Assembly (NCBI GenBank): GCA_047495785.1
Contig: JBLDXI010000042.1
Span: forward strand, 4,154,001-4,218,000
From: Lepidodermella squamata
Taxonomy: Eukaryota > Animalia > Gastrotricha
DNA length: 64,000 nt
Direction: 5' to 3'
Shown: positions 1 through 15,869 of the stretch, in pieces
Layout of the letters: each line of letters begins with the position of its first letter
How positions within the stretch are numbered: the first letter of the stretch is position 1
Made by a program: the position numbers and the translations under genes
Notes under the pieces: generated by a model
Database searches by the model: none
What the model saw: only the letters and a program-made list of their open reading frames with translations
What the model was told of the DNA's origin: nothing

Positions 1-227
1 CTTTTGACCTTATTAAAAAATTACACAAAAATCAGGCGTTTAAATCGAGGTGCCGCGTCTTGGTACGTCTCATGGTGAGTGGGGTACCAAAACCTGGAAG
101 AAGGGCAATCTTAAGCTGTCATTTAGTATAGTTCCTATCCTATTCCTATTCTATTCCTATTCTAATCTCTATTCCTCCAAGGGTACGAGGCATCACGTGT
201 TGCAGTATTCACGCATTGCGTACAGTC

Positions 228-350
228 AGCCAATCATAAAGCGTGTGAATTATAGGGCCAGCCAATCAACACACAGAGTGCGCTTCTTTATAATTGCATT
301 TTTTCAGACTGACCAATAAGAACGCGCACAATTATTAGCCTTTATAAACA
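228..350 (+). promoter_or_regulatory. H4 promoter with three CCAAT boxes and a TATA-like box
   Basis: CCAAT at about 230, 262 and 313; TATAAA at about 343, roughly 100 nt upstream of the ATG. Confidence 0.6.
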
Positions 351-443
351 ACCGCAGCTCAGTTTTTTTTGCATCACATACGAACGCGCTACTGCTGATT
401 CATCGATTTTTCTGCTTACTAACTACTTCACTTTTTACACATC

Positions 444-815
<372 letters not shown>

Positions 816-1544
816 AATAACACATTCTTTGCTATTTCTCCACAATTCCAGTCTCTCCTTTTTGCAAATTTCACTAACGAAATGACGTGCTTTTAACTAA
901 TAAAATTCGACAAGGCATCATGATAATGGATCGTTTATTAAGGAGGTCGAAACACAGGTAACACACGTCACCTTGATGACAACCACTGTGGCTTCACACA
1001 GATCTGACGAGATTCTGCCCGTTCAGCGCGGAGCACAGCGCAACATTTTAGGATATTAGACATTTGGAGAGCGTCTTACAGAACTTGGAGAACAGTAATT
1101 TGGAGCTGTTTCTCGGCTCCTCTCTAGCAAGCTCAAGCTCGTGAAAATTGTCCAAAGTCTATTTTGAGGCTACTAGTCACGCTTAAAGGGCTCATGAAGT
1201 ATTGCATATGGTTTAAATCTTAATTATTAATTTGGGAACACAATTCGGAAATATCTAATGACATCCGCTTGCAAATAAGGTAATGTTAAGCGATTTGCGC
1301 AATTTTCGACTGGTGTGCGTTTCTTAGTGTACACTCACGTCATTTCGATTTTACGAGCGTCTCCGTTCAGTGAAAACTGAAGTAATCACGTGATTTTACT
1401 GTTTTAACAAATATGTAATCTGTAATGAATTGCAAATTTTGTTAATAATAGACGGTGTAACATGGACTTTCAATATCGATGAAGTGAAATGAAGTTTCTG
1501 AGCAGATTGAGTTAATGCATGATCAGGAAACGTGTAACCTAGTT

Positions 1545-2751
1545 CTAACTCTGCTGTTGAACCAATTGCAGCCTATCGGCTTTCCCAGCCACCTGACTTC
1601 TCAACCGCAGGACAAGAAATCTACGAAGGAAAACTCCTGATAACAGAGGTTAAATCAGCGAAGTATGGCGCTTACATTGCTCCTGCGAGTGCTATTAAAG
1701 TAAGGCCAAGGAGACCTCCCAGAACGCCACCTAGTATAGCTGCTAATTGATCATCATGGGTTTTGGGCTCCTCAGTAGTAGCGGGGGTAGTAGTGGGTTC
1801 GTCTGGTTCAACTAAACAACCCTCGTCAGTAGCCAAAATCGGATCCATGCGATTGTCATTGCAATGATCGCCACAACAAGTGCATGCCTTTTCGAAACTG
1901 CTGAATCCCGTAATAGTTTTGTTACTCGTAGCAGATTTGCCACAGCCCCCGATCGACTTGGGAAGAGATGTGCAGCCCCATTGGTAATCGACAAAGGATT
2001 CCAGTGCAGGTATTGAAGTCGACATTTTCTTCGAATGAAGGAAATTCAGAAGTGTTAGACAGTGACTTTGAAACGTTACCGAGCAATATTGATTCGATGT
2101 ACATGATATTTCGCTTCGCGTAGCCGGCTGTACACCATCCGTAGCGTCCTGTTCACAATTGCATTTACTCCATATATTCACCGGAAGGGAAATCAATTAG
2201 TACCTTGACAGCATAAGCGAAGCACGTTTTATCTGCCACTGGTTCGGCCAGACATTCGCTGTCCATGTTAGCTCCGTTACAGCCATCGCCGCAACACAAG
2301 CACAATCGCTTATAGATTTCCACACGTTCGTAAGTTTTGCCGTCGATCGTGATTTCTTGGTGGCTCTCAGTCCGGAATTCGATGTTTTCGTCACATTGAT
2401 AACCGAAATCAGCACCGAAAAGAGCAAGCTCCGCCGTACAGCCCCATTCGATATTGACCAGACGGTCTAGCTCTTTCCCGTTGTCATCCTTGAAAATTTC
2501 TAACGCGTATGATTTCTGAAAAGCTCAATCATTTAATACAACATTATTTACCATCCATTAAAAGATACCATGCATATAGATGAATCCTCCACGCAATCGC
2601 GAGAGACTGAGCCTTCAGGTAGGGATCCGGATTGTTTCTCGCCCGGCTTACCTGGACCTTGGTTGACTTGATAACAGGAAGCTGCAAAGCTGGCTCCGAG
2701 CAAGCCACTTGTTAATAAAAAAATGAGGACGATACAATGACTGTGTGACAT
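1545..2751 (-). CDS. Type I membrane protein with two Ly6/uPAR (three-finger)-like domains
   Basis: Five-exon model. Signal MSHSHCIVLIFLLTSGLLGASFA; domain 1 SCYQ...WGC...CLCCGDGCN; domain 2 TCFA...WGC...CTCCGDHCN; Thr/Pro/Glu stalk; TM LAAILGGVLGGLLGLTLIALAGAIFLVL; short tail ending VQQQS. Confidence 0.75.
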
Positions 2752-3078
2752 ATTTCTGTTATGCAAAGATAAATTTATTTTCTGTTCAGAATTTCTTCTG
2801 CGTTTGTTTCAGATAAAGTCAGGGAAGCATTATCATAAAACCTCGTAAAGAATAAGTATACATTCTACCGTCTGATAAGGAAAAACCGCTTGATGATGAT
2901 GATTACACTTTATACACTCTCATCATCTGATTTCGCCGTGCGGAGGTGCAACAATTCCTAACGAAGAATACACATTTTGAAGACAGGATTTTTATTAATA
3001 CTTCCTATAGCACGTGCTTTTGCTACAATACAAGAATTTAATAATCAGCTGAGTCAGTCTTCATATGTTTCGGTCACC

Positions 3079-3973
3079 TCAGTGCTTGGTGCATTGAGCT
3101 GCCGAGTCGGTGCGCTTGATATCGATTTCGAACCTGAAGGAGCGGTACTTGAGACCAGGGCAGCACGAGTATTCCTTGTCCACGTACGACGCCTTGGTAG
3201 CCACCAATTGGTATCCTTGCGACTCCTCAAAGTCTTCCGTGCCGATTTCGCTCTTACCGTCAGCGAAGCTGATGTCCATCTTCGTATTGTCGTGAACCCA
3301 TGAGCCGGCTTTCAGACTGCACTTGAGAAGACCGCCGTCAACAGACTTGCAAGCCGCTTTCTGCGGAACTTGGCCGATCCAGATCACGGAACCATCAGCC
3401 ATGACTAATGCATCAGATGCCAATCGTTGGCGCAGTTGATCGGCAGCACCGCCGTTGAAACTGTTGTTAAGAGAGTAGGAATCACATGAGACAGATAAAT
3501 GAAAGCTAGATAACAAAATTACTCATTGTAAAAGACAACGTCAGGCCTCCAAATTTTATCGGCAGGGAGAGCGACGGAGTCGGCGCCTTCAAAGCGTTTC
3601 GGGTCCCAGGAAAGGGCGGCATCGTTCCAGAACAGTTTGACAAAAGATGAAATGGTTGCAAAGTTTTCCGAATCAACGCTCACGATCTTGACCAAGTCCA
3701 GTCCAAAAGAAACTTTGACAGCTTCGGATCTGAATGTAGAAAGGATTAGAATTGATTACTCTGCAGAAAAATAGGCTTACGGTTTAGATACTGGGCGACC
3801 TGACGTACCCTGTTCGGCGGCGGTATGTAGCAAATGCTTGCCCAAATCACGTTCAGGGGCATCTGGAACCCAGAAAAGAAAGTCTAATACTGAATATAAG
3901 TTTCTAGCGACTTACTTGTAGCCGATGCGACGAGAAAGATAGCCGAAGCGATGCAGAAAATCTTCAGAGCCAT
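3079..3973 (-). CDS. Soluble acetylcholine-binding-protein-like (Cys-loop receptor ligand-binding domain only), copy 1
   Basis: Four exons. Signal MALKIFCIASAIFLVASA; motifs WNDAALSWDP, IWRPDVVFYN (loop A), CKSVDGGLLKC, GSWVH (loop B), YSCCPGLKY (loop C). Stop after KRTDSAAQCTKH, with AATAAA about 85 nt downstream and no TM exon. Confidence 0.9.
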
Positions 3974-4515
3974 TTTCGCGATATATTTCAGTGGAGTCGT
4001 ATATGTAGAAGAAATGTCGATTGTGAAAAACTGCGGTTGATTTCAGCCGCTATTACGCCGGGTTATATAGCTGATGTCCGCGCGTACTATTCTTAAATTA
4101 TAAAGCGGCAAAAAACAAGATTTTACTAATAATAAGGATAGTACCCATGTTATCAACGGACTTGGCATGCGCGTGCGTCAACGGACTGGCAGTACTTACA
4201 CGTGAGGCAATCAGAACACAAATACTCATGTTGATAACGAATATGTATGAGATTCCCAGGTTAACCACGGAATGTAATTACTATTCTCGGAATGGCGTCT
4301 GAACTTTGCGGTCATTCTTCAGTAATTAAGGACAATCTCACGTTGGATTTTCGCTGCTTCCTTAATGTTAATCCTGATCCAACCAACGACACTAGTCCAC
4401 TTCAAGCGATTTGTCTGTCGATTCCTTCAAATAATGTTACGACTCGATCTGCAATGGTTACTGGCAGCTGAGAGTTCAGTGACCAGGGGTAGCCAGTTGT
4501 AATTATTGTTACGTA

Positions 4516-4720
4516 TACAGTAAAACCTGTTATCTCGAACTCTGTGTATCTCGAAAACCTTTGTATGTCGAAGTCTTACCGAGGAACCGTGGGTTTCTCA
4601 GCATGTAGCACATAATTCAGCCCGCGATGTCGAACTCTGTCTCGAAAGTCGAAGGGCGGGAAAGGAACGGTAGCCATATAGTGTATTATTTTTACTCTTT
4701 GGAGTCGAATTTTCGTAGCT
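4516..4720. mobile_element. Probable single end of a pogo/Tigger-like DNA element
   Basis: TA then CAGTAAAACCTGTTATCTCGAAC with repeated TCTCGAA/TGTCGAA subterminal motifs. No matching opposite end was found. Confidence 0.45.
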
Positions 4721-5289
4721 CATTCTTAGTTTTGAGCGATGACGCGCGCGCGCAAGGCAAGGAGCAAAGTAGCTAAAGATCGTCTAAGCGTTTTGTTCAA
4801 CTACCTGCAGCGCGCTCGGCGAGAAGCTGAAGCCGTTTGTAATCGACAACCCCCGGGTTTGACTGGCCGGAAGCTCGTAATACCGGACGCGAAGAGGAAA
4901 GAGGATTAGCTAAAATGTCTGCTCAAACTGCAAATTGCGTGAAGGTAAACAGTTGCCAGTAAGGTTTGAAAGGGATGGAAAGCGGAGGGTTGGCTTGAAG
5001 ATCTAAAATAAAGCATGCATAACTTGCCTTTTGGGATTTTTTTTCCTGTTTTGATTGGCGTCAGCTGAGACATTTGTTTAACACTTACGGTTGATTGCAG
5101 TCATCAAATTCGGCTGAAGTATGCTGCGGTGGGCTTGTGGTGCAATAATGGCAATTAGATCATTACTTCGTTCATCGATGGAAGAATAATATACGTCCGA
5201 AATGGTTAATCGTCTCAACTTTTATTTTTCTTGGAGTAAATAATGTGAAACCAGCATTCTGAAATTCCTATAACTTATAGTTCTTACTT

Positions 5290-5611
5290 GGGGAAAAAAA
5301 GATTTCATCCGACAAAATGTCTTTTATTATCAGATAAATGTCTTATTCCATCCAAAATCCAAAAATGTGACTAAAATCATCCGACATGAAAGTATCGATT
5401 TTCTCGATTTTCTCGGATTCGATTTTCCCGTAGGGGCATTCCCCTTTTATGCACCCTATTTTGGCCCTGAACCGGAAGAATTTTATGGTAAAAGATTTAT
5501 GGCGATCTAAGTAGTCACTTTTTTACTTCAATTTTTCGAAAATATGACAATAGTCACATTTTTGGATTTCGAATGGAATAAGACATGTGTCGGATGAAAA
5601 AAGTCTCACCC
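5290..5611. mobile_element. MITE with imperfect TIRs and 8-bp TSD
   Basis: Left TTTCATCCGACA...ATGTCTTATTCCAT...AAATCCAAAAATGTGACTA is mirrored by right TAGTCACATTTTTGGATTT...ATGGAATAAGACAT...TGTCGGATGAAA. Direct repeat TCTTACTT at 5282-5289 and 5612-5619. Confidence 0.85.
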
Positions 5612-5880
5612 TCTTACTTCTTGTTGATCATTTTGGCTCTTGCATTTGAACACGTGGCTACCCGTAAGAACGCCGCCTCAGAATCGCGACACTGTTATCA
5701 GTCGAACTCAAGTCTGCCCCCTCAGAGATGACCAATCGTATGCAACAAAAGAACTCACATCGAAAAGCCCACTCATTTCGTCGTCGTTTTTTGGCGCACT
5801 CTTCGTCCACTCAGCCAGATGTCGCGGCTACGCAGCTTTTCGTACCGTCGGACCTTAATTCAAAAAAATTATAGTCAGAA

Positions 5881-8800
5881 ATGGCAGATCTATGTTCATG
5901 TTGCCGCAGGAAGAAGAAAGCGGAAGAAAGTGAAGGATGCATGGATGAAGTTGACGAGGAATTCGCTGAATTCACTACTTGCCACGGAGCGAAACGCATC
6001 TGCAACCGCAAGTGGAACATCTGGCGCCGCCTCCTTTCGCTACTTCTTGTCATCGCTAGCATGAGCGCTCTTGGGCAACAAGTCGCCGATCGTTTCACCG
6101 CATTTCTTCGATTCGAAATGAAAACTGATGTTTCGTTCAGTTTGGCTCGGCATCTCAAACTACCAGCTATTACTCTTTGCAATGTCAACATGTTTTCAAT
6201 GGCTCAACTTGGGCCCATGGATTTCGAGTTATTACTCAATGTTTCCGAGGCGCTTTTCACGGAATACTACGCTGATTTGTTCAAGAACATGTCCGCTAGC
6301 TTGATCGAAGATTCACTAGATGATAATGTAGACTTTTCGTGGCGTGAGCCATACTGGGCAGTTGCTGACAAATTTGCCAAGAAAGAGGCCGAAATCCTAC
6401 TGCGATACAATGGTTTGTGTAAGATTGGATTTGCTATCTGTAAGAAACATAAAAAAAGAAGGATTAGCAGCAAGATTTGCTAAATTTGCGAAGGTTAGGT
6501 ACTTATCCAAATGTTTATAACGCATTCATTTCAGAAATCGAATTACCCTCACTTGCGCATTTATCACTTGCGCATTTATCACTTGCGCATTTTATTTTTA
6601 CCCTTATTTTATCGCTTGCGCATTTTATCTTAAAAAAATTGAAATATCAAGTGCTCTATTGCCATTTTGTCGTATAATTAAACAATATTTATCAAAAAGT
6701 TCGACATTTGTGGTACAAACGTTTTTGTCAACTTTCCATAGTCCTATAACGGACTAGGAGACAGAAGTGACTGTTTATTTCGAATCAAAAAATCGAAAAA
6801 CATGCTAAAAGAAAAAGATTGCTTGTTCGTATAAGATGATGATTTTAGCCCGTCGTTAGATTTGATTTTCATCATCCCTTGCCATACTGCGGGTGGTAGC
6901 GCCGTGAGCCGGCCGAATACGTCCATTTTGTCCGATAAAACCGCTCAGTTTATCGAGATGGCTGTAAACCTCGGCAGCATCGATCCCGGCATTCCAAATG
7001 TTGTCGAATTCGACAGTAGCTTCTTGAATTTGGCCTTCAATTTTCGCATACTTCTTCAAAAATCTATTGACACGTGCTCCAGACTCGAGCTTTCGTTGTC
7101 TCGCTGCGGCTACGACCTCCTCTTCTTGAAGAACCAAAATCAAACGCCAAATGTTCAGATGTCTCTTGCGACACAGGCGGTTAAGTCTAGAATTATATAT
7201 TCATTCAAAAATGTCAATTTCTCAGCGCAAAGTTTGGCTTACTTATGATGCCAGCCCTCATTGGCGTTGTTGGTTCGGTGCCTTTCAGAATGAACACACC
7301 ATTCATGGATAGTCGCACGCCACTGTGATTTCCAATATTGAACGAAACCGGCCATTGACGGAGGACAATCTTGATAAAGTTGCGGAATTACGTCCAGGAT
7401 TTGTTCCGCGGTCAGCAGAGGCAGCACCATGAAGCGGCGAACAAACTTATAATACTGCCCCTGTCGAGAATACAGCGTGATCCCATTGTTATTCTGGACC
7501 CATCTATCAAAAAATGCCTTGATAGTAAGATCTAATGAAAAAAATCAAATGTTTACCGGTATAAACATTGCGTGTAGTGGAAGAAGCAAAGTCGTAGGTC
7601 GTGGTAAAACGCTCGCAAAACTGGGAGGAGACCGGTCTCGAAGTCCGAAGTGGCCGTTTTCACAGAGAAATCAACATAACGAGTTAGGCTCTCGAAAACT
7701 TTGGTGTAGAGCTCGGTTGTCTTCCTTGTCATAAAAACATAGATACCACTGACAAAAACACCGCGCACCAAGGAATTAATGGTAAATAGTTGATAGAAAT
7801 GTTCCGGAGCAGCCTAACAAAAGGAATTGAAATTAAAACGCACATAATGCAGCTAAAAAAGGTGCTTACATCGAAAGTGCCATCCATGAAGTGTCGCTTT
7901 GCACGTTTCAGACGCCTCAGTGCTCGATTGCTCGCAAAAACAATTGCGTGATCGTCGCCATCTTTGACCGAGTGGAGGTAGAATTTTTTGCCTTTTTTCG
8001 TCGCCTTGAATTTTGCAATTCGTTCATCAGGATTCTTCGAGCGCAATATTTTCACCAGCTCCTTTGCTGACTTGGGTAACGGTGGGACATTTTTCTTCTT
8101 CGCTCTGTACAAAGACGCCTGTATTTTGTAATAAGGCTGCAGTACTCGGTCATCCATTTCTGCTTCAATTTCTGCCTTACGGTACGCTTCAGGAATCGGC
8201 GCGTCCTCGTTTTTGATTTGAGCTTTCAAATTTTGAACAGGATGGAAGTCTTTGCAGGCGGGCTTCTCCGCGTGCCATTTCAAGTGAGAATACGATGTTG
8301 GGTTTTCCAGCCCTCTTATATCAAGCGATCCATCGTCGTTGATATAGATTTTTACTGGACATCCGCATTTCCGGTTGAATTTGCATTGGTAGAAAGCTCG
8401 TTTGTTCATTGTACGCAAATGAAAATGGTCGCCATGAAAGCACATCAAACTGTTACATTTTGTCGATCCTTGATCGTACAGTGTGTAGGAGCCTTTATCG
8501 GTCGCAGGAAATGCCTCAGTTTCAGGTAACACGGACAAGTTTGAATTAGCTGAACTCGAATTTGATGCTGTAGAATTTGAATCAGATCGAATCGATGCTC
8601 TTGATTCAGCTCTCGTTTCAGCTCGTGACTCCCTTGACTCCAGATCCCTGATCCTAGACTGTAATTCCCTGATCAGGTTAGTTTTCGGCGAAAAATTCTC
8701 CCCTTCACCACTTCGATCGTCAATCAGGACGTCCAGAACTTCTTCTTCGGCTTCATTCACGTCAAGCAGGACGTGCTGCGCTCTCAGCTCCTCGACTTGT

Positions 8801-10612
8801 GCCTTAGACAGGCCATGCTTCTTCCGATGATGGCAAGCTAAGCCCCGGGCGTCAGAGAAGGAATGCTCGCATCCATCAACAACGCAGTTGAGTTTCATTG
8901 CCCAGTCTCAAGTGTTTCAGAAAACATTAGAATGAAAAATGACGGTTTGAAAATCCACTCGACGTTCACCGCACCACATGGTGCTCGGCACGTGCTTGAA
9001 ATGGCGCCCAAAACATGTCTACTCTGTTTTTCTATTTTTCGCTTTCAATTCTGTCTCCTAGTCCGTTATAGGACTATGGAAAGTTGACAAAAACGTTTGT
9101 ACCACAAATGTCGAACTTTTTGATAAATATTGTTTAATTATACGACAAAATGGCAATAGAGCACTTGATATTTCAATTTTTTTAAGATAAAATGCGCAAG
9201 CGATAAAATAAGGGTAAAAATAAAATGCGCAAGTGATAAATGCGCAAGTGATAAATGCGCAAGTGAGGGCAACCCCAGAAATCGATTTTACTGTTTCTGG
9301 ATGGATGAAACGAGTAGGATGGCAACTAAGCAGGGAATCTGATGATGGTTCCTATAATGCGATTCTCAAATGCCGAGTTGGGAAAACTGGATGTAGGTTG
9401 GATAAAGTAAGAATCATAAGCGTTTTTGAGGTAGATTTTGCTGACCTGTTTCTTCCTTTCTTTTAGCACTTCAAGCAGACTCTAACCCACTCAGGCCTTT
9501 GCTACACCCTGAACTGGAAGGAGAATGCAAGCCGCTACACCCAACGAACCGCCGGGATAGACAGCGGCGTCGAACTCATCATCGATGTAGACGAGGATAA
9601 CTACTCGCCGTATTCTCTCGACAACGAGTGGTCATTCGGCGCCGGGCTCTCAGTCCTTATTCACGAATGGAACGAACCGCCTGAGATTGGCTTAGATATA
9701 GGAATTCCAACCGGAGTTGCGTAATAACCGAATATTATTTATTTTACCATCGCTAATTTATATTTTCTCCTCAGGAGTTATGTAGGCCTCGCGCAACTAG
9801 AACGGCAAATTGACAGCTATTCACCCTGGACGCAGTGCATTTCGATTGAGAATAGCACGACTGGGAAATCAGGGCCTTACTCGCAAATGGAATGCTTGGC
9901 TAGATGCAAAGCCAAGAAAACTCTCAGAGATTGCGGTTGTAGGCTATGGTTCCAACCTGGAAACGCCCCAGAATGTGGCGTCGCAAGGACCTCGGCCTGC
10001 CTCTACTATAAAGAAATAGGTACGGTTAAAGGTTCATTACAGTAAACCTGCACATTTTTTAGTTTAGTTGGGGACAATGAGGAGAAAGACGATGAGTGTA
10101 ATTTGGCATGTTTGGAAGCCTGCCACCAGATTGATTATACATATTCGACATCATTCACGAAAATGATTTCAAACAACACTTTTAAAAGTTTGGTCGGCAA
10201 ACTAAGCGAGCTGATCACTCCTGGGAGCGTCGAACTGACTAAGCCCTACATATCGTAATTGACGCACTCTTTACTTAAGTTGCTTAATACACATTTTTGC
10301 AGAAACAGCATTGTTTCACTTCAAATCGGTTATTCTCAGCTGTCAGTCGAGAAAACACGAACCTCCCCAGCTCAGAGTTTGAGCTCGTTCCTCGGTGACT
10401 TGGGCGGCCAACTCGGGCTATTCGCCGGCATTTCAGTCGTCACAATTTTCGAACTCCTCGAGTACCCTTTCGCTAAAATCTGGTTCATTTGGCGTGGCAA
10501 AAAGTCGGGCCATGAAAAGCCGCCTGTCAATACTACATCAAAAGCTGTTTCAGTAGTTGAACTCCAAACAACGGGCGATTTTTCACGATCAAGAAGTAGA
10601 CGCATAGATTGA
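5881..10612 (+). CDS. DEG/ENaC (ASIC-like) channel subunit, interrupted by a Mutator element at the intron 1/exon 2 junction
   Basis: FTTCHG (HG motif), TM1, LPAITLCNVN, GLCYTLN, GLSVLIHEWNEPP, Cys-rich thumb, TM2 LGDLGGQLGLFAGISVVTIFE. Exons 5881-6412, 9279-9406, 9467-9720, about 9775-10019, about 10068-10254 and about 10303-10612 splice in frame. Confidence 0.9.
6540..9275 (-). mobile_element. Autonomous Mutator-like (MULE) DNA transposon
   Basis: Near-perfect TIRs of about 227 bp (6540-6766 and 9049-9275) with CACTTGCGCATTTAT subrepeats. TSD CAGAAATC(G) at 6532-6540 and 9276-9284. Contains an internal transposase gene. Confidence 0.95.
6856..8898 (-). CDS. MULE transposase, about 625 aa
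   Basis: Exons 8898-7870, 7813-7557, 7503-7243 and 7186-6856 join in frame. N-terminal C2H2 finger, FLYWCH-like segment, MDGTF (D), SDFE (D), CFFH, TNNANEGWH (E). Confidence 0.93.
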
Positions 10613-10736
10613 AGTAAGGAATGAAGAAGAGAGGAGATGGTAAATAAAAAACAAGCTGCACCGGGTGTTATTGTTCTTGTTTACGCATTTCAGTACACAG
10701 AGTATTGAGTGCAAGAAATATGCATCTCGCTCTAAG

Positions 10737-12044
10737 ATGAAAGCTGAATGCATCATGGCATCACGTTTTTTCGACCTCAGCCTTCTGCCGATCAAAGTAG
10801 TGTATTTTCTGGTCTACGGCGGAGTTGCGGCCTACTCGCCTTATGTCGTCCTCTATTACAAAGCCAGGGGTCTGTCTCCCCAGCAAATTGGAATCGTCGA
10901 ATTCTGCTATGTTGTTACTAGCTCACTTTCACTGCCTGTCGTCACAATGCTCGCTGACCGGCTTAACCGGCCATCGACAGTTTTGGCGTCTGCCTTGCTA
11001 TGGCTAAACATCTTCGCTACATCGATGGCATTTGATATGCCAAAACTCATGATAGACACTTGGAGCCTGAGTCCTGTCTTCGTCTTTCTACTGCTAAGAT
11101 CTGTGCTATGCGGTGTTGCTGTGGGTCCTACTATGGCTTTGTGCGACTCGATAGCTTATGATCTATTAGGACCAGATAATTACGCGAAATGGGGCCAACA
11201 GCAAATGTTCGGGGCGTTAGCTTGGGGGCTAAGCGCAGTCACCTCAGGAATAATCATGGATTCCTCATCTAACGACAACCGAGCCTTCTACTTGAGTTCT
11301 TTCTTCCTGATAGCCGCCATCATTACGACTTTGGTCTGGCTGCCTAACCCTGGAGTAAGGGCTAAAATCGACAAGGAGCAGTCAATTTCTTTTGCAGATA
11401 AGCTTCGCCTGATTTTTTCATCAAGGCAATTTTGTCTGAATTGCGGGGTAGCCTTGATATCAGGAACTCTTCTCTCTGTAACAGAAGTCGTAATTCCTAT
11501 TCAAATCGATAGTCTAGGCGCCCCTAAGACTTTGCTAGGCATCGTTACAATCGCTGTTTGCTTATTCGAGTTGCCAACGCTATTCTTCTCTGGTCCGATT
11601 GTTGATTGGCTGGGCGGCGAGCAAACTACCTATCTGAGCATGTTTCTAGCGTATGGCTTGAGGTACTTCTTATGGGGTGTTTTGACGGCAGACACAGTTC
11701 GCCTGGCGATCCCCGTAGAAATGCTGCTTCACGCCGTCTGCTACGGCATCTATTACCCGGCTGCGGGTAGGATTGCTGCATCAAATGCTCCGCCTGGGAT
11801 GAGTTCGACTGTTCAAGGAATTTTAAGCACGTGCTACTCTGGTGTCGGGACAGCGATCGGCACTTTACTGGCCCCTATGATCTACGACGGCTTTGGGCCC
11901 AGTGTAGCTTTTAAATGCTACTCAATGGTTGCAATTGTTTGTTTTGTCGCTTTTACGAAAATAATCCTGCAGATGAGGGTAACTATAAGAGTTACACCGA
12001 GAGATCATTCATGTAAAATCGATTTTAAAGAGAATCAACAATAA
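10737..12044 (+). CDS. Major facilitator superfamily transporter (MFSD6/MFS_1-like), intronless
   Basis: About 12 hydrophobic segments. Motifs IKVVYFLVYG, PYVVLYYKARGLSPQQIG, LADRLNR, WGQQQMFGALAWG, ELPTLFFSG, APPGMSSTVQG. Confidence 0.88.
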   Translation: MKAECIMASRFFDLSLLPIKVVYFLVYGGVAAYSPYVVLYYKARGLSPQQIGIVEFCYVVTSSLSLPVVTMLADRLNRPSTVLASALLWLNIFATSMAFDMPKLMIDTWSLSPVFVFLLLRSVLCGVAVGPTMALCDSIAYDLLGPDNYAKWGQQQMFGALAWGLSAVTSGIIMDSSSNDNRAFYLSSFFLIAAIITTLVWLPNPGVRAKIDKEQSISFADKLRLIFSSRQFCLNCGVALISGTLLSVTEVVIPIQIDSLGAPKTLLGIVTIAVCLFELPTLFFSGPIVDWLGGEQTTYLSMFLAYGLRYFLWGVLTADTVRLAIPVEMLLHAVCYGIYYPAAGRIAASNAPPGMSSTVQGILSTCYSGVGTAIGTLLAPMIYDGFGPSVAFKCYSMVAIVCFVAFTKIILQMRVTIRVTPRDHSCKIDFKENQQ

Positions 12045-14975: not shown

Positions 14976-15869
14976 TTAGTGCTTGGTGCATTGAGCTGCC
15001 GAGTCGGTGCGCTTGATATCGATTTCGAACCTGAAGGAGCGGTACTTGAGACCAGGGCAGCACGAGTATTCCTTGTCCACGTACGACGCCTTGGTAGCCA
15101 CCAATTGGTATCCTTGCGACTCCTCAAAGTCTTCCGTGCCGATTTCGCTCTTACCGTCAGCGAAGCTGATGTCCATCTTCGTATTGTCGTGAACCCATGA
15201 GCCGGCTTTCAGACTGCACTTGAGAACACCGCCATCAACAGACTTGCACGCCGCCTTCTGCTCAACCTGGCCGATCCAGATCACGGAGCCATCAGCCATG
15301 ACTAAGGCATCAGATGCCAATCGTTGGCGCAGTTGATCGGCAGCACCGCCGTTGAAACTTTTGTAAAGAAAATGAGAAATGCATTAGCCATACCAATGAA
15401 AGCTAGATGACAAAATTACTCATTGTAAAAGACAACGTCAGGCCTCCAAATTTTATCGGCAGGGAGAGCGACGGAGTCGGCGCCTTCAAAGCGTTTCGGG
15501 TCCCAGGAAAGGGCGGCGTCGTTCCAGAACAGTTTGACAAATGATGAAATTGTTGCAAAATTATCCGAATCAACGTTCACGATCTTGACCAAGTCCAGTC
15601 CAAAGGAAACTTTGACTGCGTCGGATCTGAATATAGAAGTGCAGGATTTATAGGTTTGGTAGATCATAAGTCTTACGGTTTAGATACTGGGCGACCTGAT
15701 GTACCCTGTTCGGTGGCGGTATGGAGCAAATGCTTGCCCAAATCACGTTCAGGGGCGTCTGAAATCCAGAAAAGAAAGTCTAATGCTGAATATAAGTTTC
15801 TAGCGACTTACTTGTAGCCGATGCGACGAGTATGATAGCCGAAGCGATGCAGAAAATATTCAGAGCCAT
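14976..15869 (-). CDS. Soluble acetylcholine-binding-protein-like, copy 2
   Basis: Same four-exon structure as 3079-3973 and a near-identical protein (MALNIFCIASAIILVASA...YSCCPGLKY...AQCTKH). About 300 bp of upstream sequence is also duplicated. Confidence 0.9.

Follow-up and report, generated by a model that had tools for sequence, protein, structure and literature searches.

A 2,736-bp Mutator-like DNA transposon sits in exon 2 of a DEG/ENaC channel gene of the gastrotrich Lepidodermella squamata. The locus lies in a 64,000-nucleotide stretch of contig JBLDXI010000042.1 (assembly GCA_047495785.1, positions 4,154,001 to 4,218,000, forward strand), which we call the window and whose numbering is used throughout. 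The target-site duplication made by the insertion includes the splice acceptor of intron 1, one copy of which now stands on each side of the element (the proximal copy next to the native intron, the distal copy beyond the element). As judged from the DNA, the function of this gene, which belongs to a multi-gene family, is most likely lost or strongly reduced on this haplotype. The event is ordinary in kind and neat in geometry, and as it stands it is a young insertion allele.

The insertion and its host gene

A repeat search of the window found inverted arms of 228 nt (6543-6770 and 9045-9272) that are 99% complementary, with complete arm-to-arm identity over positions 7-227 from the termini (221 nt). 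By comparing the borders of other copies in the same genome, the true ends were set at 6540 (GAATTACCCTCAC...) and 9275 (...GTGAGGGCAACCC), for a total of 2,736 bp, with the transposase on the minus strand. Each arm carries three to four 15-nt sub-repeats, TCACTTGCGCATTTA. A scan of 5500-10800 against Rfam gave no match.

The target-site duplication is exactly 8 bp, CAGAAATC (CAG|AAATC), at 6532-6539 and 9276-9283. It covers the three last bases of intron 1 and the five first bases of exon 2, so that the two acceptor copies have the same bases from -3 to +5. The insertion point is 5 nt into exon 2, a value that settles the 5-6 nt given by the first-pass annotation, a reading of the window made without database searches. 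That annotation had also written the duplication with an optional ninth base, CAG|AAATC(G). The 8-bp copies, with the acceptor inside them, are present on both sides as it said, but agreement of the 9th and 10th bases (GA) past the duplication arises only from the element's own GA start. The site before insertion can be reconstructed as ...cattcatttCAG|AAATCgattttact...

The channel gene and the parts of the insertion are laid out as follows.

5881-6412, plus strand: DEG/ENaC exon 1 (177 codons and 1 nt; N-terminus, HG motif, first transmembrane segment, TM1); Pfam ASC E=7.5e-13, profile 1-118
6413-6534, plus strand: native intron 1, 122 nt, acceptor cattcatttCAG, by direct reading
6532-6539: left copy of the target-site duplication, CAG|AAATC, comprising the proximal acceptor and the first 5 nt of exon 2
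6540-9275, minus strand: autonomous Mutator-like element, 2,736 bp; termini from nine paired genome copies
6540-6770: left terminal inverted repeat, from the repeat search; sub-repeats at 6549-6593 and 6612-6626
9045-9275: right terminal inverted repeat, from the repeat search; mirrored sub-repeats at 9190-9266
9276-9283: right copy of the target-site duplication, CAG|AAATC, the distal, spare acceptor
9284-9406, plus strand: remainder of exon 2 (originally 6535-6539 plus 9284-9406, 128 nt), donor AAA|GTAAGA; homologous exon in paralogues
9467-9720, plus strand: exon 3; Pfam ASC E=1e-12, profile 168-245
9775-10019, plus strand: exon 4; Pfam ASC E=3e-10, profile 273-338
10068-10254, plus strand: exon 5; Pfam ASC E=0.0031 (weak), profile 351-387
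10303-10612, plus strand: exon 6 (second transmembrane segment, TM2, GLFAGISVVTIFELLE; stop 10610-10612); Pfam ASC E=2.5e-15, profile 401-455

The host gene has six exons and about 551 codons on the plus strand, with all frames open. Pfam scans of this gene and of the transposase were run exon by exon. Exons 1, 3, 4 and 6 each match ASC (PF00858) above the cut-off and exon 5 matches it weakly, in collinear order, and the gap left in the profile (119-167) corresponds to the 43-residue exon 2. Canonical splice sites and the family motifs (HG, TM1, TM2) are present, and the earlier description of the remaining exons as intact holds. The exon 1 donor, G|GTTTGT at 6412|6413, is in phase 1. Two paralogues on another contig (L046 and L047 on C13) have a phase-1 intron at the identical codon position, and their exon 2 sequences align without gaps to that of the host gene (YH|VESFSVDHW and FN|QSNFTVRQW, against YN|EIDFTVSGW). 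With at least five paralogous loci in the genome, the animal plausibly tolerates the loss of one copy.

Since an exact duplication abuts exact family termini in a single-copy locus, the element, its duplication and its position in exon 2 constitute a genuine transposition into an otherwise intact DEG/ENaC gene. The presence of the acceptor within the duplication looks like a coincidence; the nine duplications of the family have no common motif.

Two other accounts of the locus have very little probability. The least probable is a chimera of assembly or of whole-genome amplification; the probable source assembly was made from a single animal by multiple displacement amplification, which creates chimeric reads (PMC11660948). 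Chimera formation would not, however, place a complete two-ended element in a single-copy locus, nor give an exact 8-bp duplication at family termini; such exact repeats flank eight of nine paired copies of the family at identical termini, and the ninth is off by one base. Scarcely more credible is an old insertion, with a channel pseudogene around a relic element. Such a history would suit the premature stop that follows if the proximal acceptor is used, but each of the six host exons has an open frame, the canonical splice sites and family motifs are retained, and the element itself has 221 nt of arm-to-arm identity and an open transposase frame.

Splicing across the insertion

Joining 6412 to 9279 removes the whole element and gives ..RYN-EIDFTVSGW, the exact wild-type message, the native donor (6412|6413) and the duplicated acceptor (9278|9279) being in phase. 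This join would restore the normal protein, because the two paralogues have their phase-1 intron at that position. Joining 6412 to 6535 instead gives EIELPSLAHL...HFVV, with 47 extra codons and a stop at 6675-6677. Our translations agree on both counts with the first-pass annotation, which had the distal join restoring YN-EIDFTVSGW and the proximal one reading into the terminal inverted repeat as far as HFVV.

The sequences that precede the two acceptors differ. The number of T residues in the 20 nt upstream is 2 at the distal site, 10 at the proximal site and 12 at the intron 2 acceptor; in the 12 nt before [C/T]AG it is 5-8 at eight acceptors of the host and transposase genes identified by eye, and 1 at the distal site. 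What precedes the distal acceptor is GAGGGCAACCC, the G+C-rich end of the transposon, and the earlier remark that this site lacks a pyrimidine tract is borne out. All other introns of the host and transposase genes measure 47-122 nt. Between the proximal and distal sites lie 139 other AG dinucleotides.

These features suggest the following course. An 8-bp staggered cut straddled the boundary of intron 1 and exon 2, as the sequence records, and repair left CAG|AAATC on each side of the element. The spliceosome would then mostly join exon 1 to 6535. We expect the proximal site to be favoured because intron 1 is preserved there over its full 122 nt together with the five bases that open exon 2, because transcription reaches it about 2.7 kb before the other copy, and because the intron that it ends is short like the others. 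The mRNA would next enter the transposon end, gain 47 foreign codons and stop, so that the product would be a stub with TM1 only and the transcript would probably be degraded as nonsense-containing. We consider this truncating outcome the probable main fate of the pre-mRNA. Residual normal mRNA could arise by two routes, precise repair through the weak downstream acceptor and imprecise repair through excision at the base of a 228-bp hairpin; the three fates are not mutually exclusive. Where the first-pass annotation had offered a choice between a transposon hidden as an intron and a hypomorphic allele, the sequence leans towards a disruptive allele.

Several points weigh against a predominantly truncating outcome. 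The choice of splice site is drawn from general rules (intron context; first come, first served), and we know of no information on splicing in this phylum. One paralogue has the inferred acceptor aaaaaatcag, so acceptors poor in T may be functional here. Folding of the 228-bp hairpin would put the distal AG within a few nucleotides of the proximal AG and could raise its use. The host gene has no decay at all, which fits a very recent insertion and equally a tolerated one. No empty-site allele was found in the assembly, in which the locus is single-copy, and this is a caveat as to zygosity.

The principal spliceosomal alternative is that the spare CAG at 9276-9278 is used in a substantial share of transcripts, enlarging intron 1 to 2,866 nt (6413-9278) and leaving the insertion nearly silent. 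We judge this unlikely. It draws support from the identity of the two acceptor copies from -3 to +5, from the restored frame and paralogue-conserved sequence of the distal join and from the lack of degeneration in the host gene; the inverted arms would fold the element away and bring the distal AG alongside the native branch region, and transposon-borne introns that use a splice site from the target duplication are documented (PMC11282704). On the other side, the 20 nt upstream of the spare acceptor contain 2 T, and the sequence there, GAGGGCAACCC, would be tied up in the stem of the hairpin. The proximal site has not been altered, comes first in the transcript and bounds an intron of the usual short length, whereas a 2.9-kb intron would be unusual. 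A further 139 AG dinucleotides lie in between. A fuller version, which we rate lower again, is that the ordinary spliceosome, helped by the hairpin, precisely removes an autonomous transposon through a duplicated host acceptor. By that account an exon hit would have become a silently enlarged old intron around an element that brings no splice signal, and the sole autonomous copy would be sheltered in an expressed gene and transcribed antisense.

Other spliceosomal solutions were tried and rejected. A cryptic donor within the read-in would not rescue the frame, as all three GT sites upstream of the stop are out of frame with 9279, and skipping of exon 2 would shift the frame, its 128 nt being no multiple of 3. 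Hence there is no further spliceosomal rescue beyond the distal acceptor. Two attempts at a splice-site matrix derived from the window were not relied on: unseeded expectation-maximisation converged on coding-sequence noise, and a donor-seeded matrix from 58 candidate introns, contaminated and poorly discriminating, gave 3.4 bits for the proximal and 1.1 bits for the distal acceptor. Host exon 1 and transposase exon 1 drew blanks in word searches, a result of little weight given the length limit of those searches, and one exact-pattern scan of metagenome contigs with the exon 2 sequence found no match.

The two-way choice of the first-pass annotation left out a third, published route, hairpin-triggered SOS splicing (PMC12779559). 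SOS splicing (Zhao et al. 2025, PMC12779559) removes exonic Tc1, Tc3 and Tc4 from Caenorhabditis elegans mRNA, and also works in human cells, where it was shown with a reporter. It is non-spliceosomal, depends on AKAP17A, CAAP1 and RTCB in the worm as in human cells, is efficient and imprecise, and acts on exonic but not intronic insertions (PMC12779559). At the present locus the paired ends would be recognised after proximal splicing, cut near the base of the stem and the mRNA re-ligated by RTCB, giving mixed small indels, some of them in frame. The element counts as exonic, and as a substrate, on condition that splicing takes the proximal acceptor, as we infer it does.

Excision of this type is improbable here, in our estimate. 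The 228-nt, 99% complementary arms would suit it, as pairing of inverted terminal repeats is both necessary and sufficient, also with unrelated DNA transposons (PMC12779559), and the genome encodes a CAAP1-domain match of 30.5 bits, above the Pfam cut-off, and an RtcB gene at 425 bits. RTCB is universal and says little, however, and a search for the RNA-binding domain of AKAP17A (PF25015), made exon by exon and of low sensitivity, returned no match here or in the control genomes. SOS splicing is not known to have been examined in this phylum. As it yields imprecise products and the site lies in a paralogue-conserved extracellular stretch (FxVxxW), rescue might fail even where excision took place. 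The single CAAP1-domain match is at 1858094-1858198 of contig C33 (locus L057) and adjoins an arginine/serine-rich open reading frame; this locus is a candidate CAAP1 orthologue.

Two further consequences concern double-stranded RNA. A hairpin formed by the inverted ends would itself be a long double-stranded RNA, and host transcription runs antisense through the transposase, so that carriers expressing both could form double-stranded RNA over the sole autonomous copy.

What the locus would mean depends on the spare acceptor. If it works, an exon insertion is neutralised purely by the geometry of target-site duplication, and there is a simple path from transposon hit to enlarged intron, unlike that of introners with their own splice site. 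If it fails, the locus is a clean natural substrate for hairpin-triggered mRNA excision in an unstudied phylum.

The transposase and its family

A four-exon gene on the minus strand encodes the transposase and, as first proposed, runs antisense to the host gene.

7870-8898, minus strand: exon 1 (343 codons; C2H2 finger, FLYWCH-like finger, first Asp in MDGTFD), an uninterrupted open reading frame
7557-7813, minus strand: exon 2 (second Asp in SDFE; C-x2-H motif CFFH), open frame
7243-7503, minus strand: exon 3 (glutamate motif NNANEGWH), open frame; flanking introns GTAAAC...GATAG and GTAAGC...TCTAG
6856-7186, minus strand: exon 4 (stop 6856-6858), open frame, phase checked; a poly(A) signal, minus-strand AATAAA, starts at 6779

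The three introns are 53-56 nt long, with GTAAG or GTAAA donors and T-rich [T/C]AG acceptors. Every exon is open in its own phase, and the predicted product has about 625 residues.

The assignment to Mutator in the first-pass annotation is supported at the superfamily level only, the domain hits of this copy being below Pfam thresholds. Exon 2 scores 18 bits against MULE (PF10551), where the cut-off is 27.6 bits (E=0.0039, positions 30-97 of the 99 in the profile), and two homologous elements from other parts of the genome match MULE just as weakly at corresponding profile positions (E=0.0017 and E=0.011). The FLYWCH match of exon 1 (18 bits, E=0.0034) is likewise under its 23.6-bit cut-off; a 57%-identical relative on contig C29, the next transposase relative in the genome, passes it with 29.2 bits. 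The motifs MDGTFD (D), SDFE (D), CFFH (C-x2-H) and NEGWH (E) were identified by eye, and we take their positions to correspond to the D, D, C-x2-H, E signature of the Mutator superfamily. The nearest named clusters in a protein atlas were MULE/ZSWIM/C2H2 (score 0.84), a lead only. Target-site duplications of the Mutator superfamily are about 8-11 bp; 8 bp is also typical of hAT elements, so that the length alone is not discriminating.

Searches of the genome for other copies covered the 121.2-Mb assembly in 151 contigs. A left-end query returned many copies with common ends. Family-wide, the outermost hexamers are asymmetric, GAATTA at one end and GGGTT[A/G] at the other (GGGTT[A/G]CCCTCAC), and in the window element they are followed by the 221 nt of perfect inverted repeat; the differing hexamers may mean that the two ends have distinct functions.

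The window element has no full-length counterpart elsewhere in the assembly, whether copies are sought by protein or by DNA. Three other contigs (C43, C17 and C73) have copies with internal deletions, which match parts of the window element at 97-99% identity. Because there is one full-length copy with derivatives so similar to it, the family must have been mobile in the recent past, with the window copy as the sole visible source of transposase. The element itself is a young and apparently functional cut-and-paste transposon, given the identity of its arms at 7-227, a transposase frame open over four exons and the closeness of its derivatives. A locus holding the sole full-length copy of a recently active Mutator-like family also aids annotation of that family.

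An 833-bp deletion derivative at about 396,927-397,759 of C73 (about 1500-2332 of locus L006), with the duplication CAGGTGGG, seems to split an open reading frame. The left part, ...AVLLPGG, resumes on the right as PGGAWIAAVQMSFKCC... in a hydrophobic frame of 161 codons without a Pfam match, and this copy may mark a second gene struck by the family. Recurrence of the family as spliced introns is not supported: the nine paired copies inspected have unrelated targets, and there is no indication of splicing for the C73 copy.

Known systems and neighbouring genes

Partial removal of exonic transposons from mRNA, and target duplications that supply a splice site, are both known already. Like Tc1, Tc3 and Tc4 in C. 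elegans, the present element is a DNA transposon with pairing ends in a coding exon that brings premature stops, with some usable mRNA possible. Its host encodes a CAAP1-like domain and RTCB as SOS-splicing hosts do, whereas AKAP17A was not detected in the exon-by-exon search. It differs from Tc1 in the length of its inverted repeats (228 nt, against 54 nt in Tc1) and from Tc1/mariner in superfamily, being Mutator-like, and from SOS cases in that the duplicated host acceptor offers a precise spliceosomal alternative.

With Mutator and MULE elements (maize MuDR, animal MULEs) it shares long inverted ends, sub-terminal repeats, DDE motifs D..D..C-x2-H..E visible by eye, a candidate N-terminal zinc-finger DNA-binding region of FLYWCH/WRKY type and end-sharing deletion derivatives. 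Against that model, its 8-bp duplication is at the low end of the range for the superfamily, its MULE hits are sub-threshold exon by exon and the terminal six bases of its two ends differ from each other, as they do throughout the family. Exon insertions of maize Mu, Ds and dSpm are spliced from pre-mRNA through cryptic sites in or near their ends, which gives leaky alleles. Unlike those cases, where the sites are cryptic and internal and removal is imprecise, the exact native acceptor stands here on the far side of the element.

Introners of Micromonas, Aureococcus and others resemble the present case in that a target-site duplication supplies a splice site after insertion into coding sequence (PMC11282704, PMC12130899). 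They are short, non-autonomous and high-copy, bring one splice site and create a new intron (PMC11282704). In contrast, the element described here is a 2.7-kb autonomous, low-copy one without any needed signal, donor and acceptor both belong to the host, and an existing intron would be enlarged rather than a new one created. In a narrow literature search we did not find a description of this geometry, in which the host acceptor is copied and removal would be precise without any contribution from the element.

As to the surroundings of the channel gene, TATAG occurs 6 nt upstream of its ATG (window 5870-5883). Downstream, at 10613-12044, is an intron-poor MFS_1_like transporter gene on the same strand (Pfam E=5.6e-48), which begins at 10737, 125 nt past the channel-gene stop. 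If the animal uses leader trans-splicing, the two genes could be an operon-like pair, and in that case premature termination within the transposon might also affect the transporter gene. Elsewhere, an intron scan of the window found identical candidate-intron sequences at 3259-3544 and 15156-15441, about 11.9 kb apart, pointing to a recent segmental duplication inside the window.

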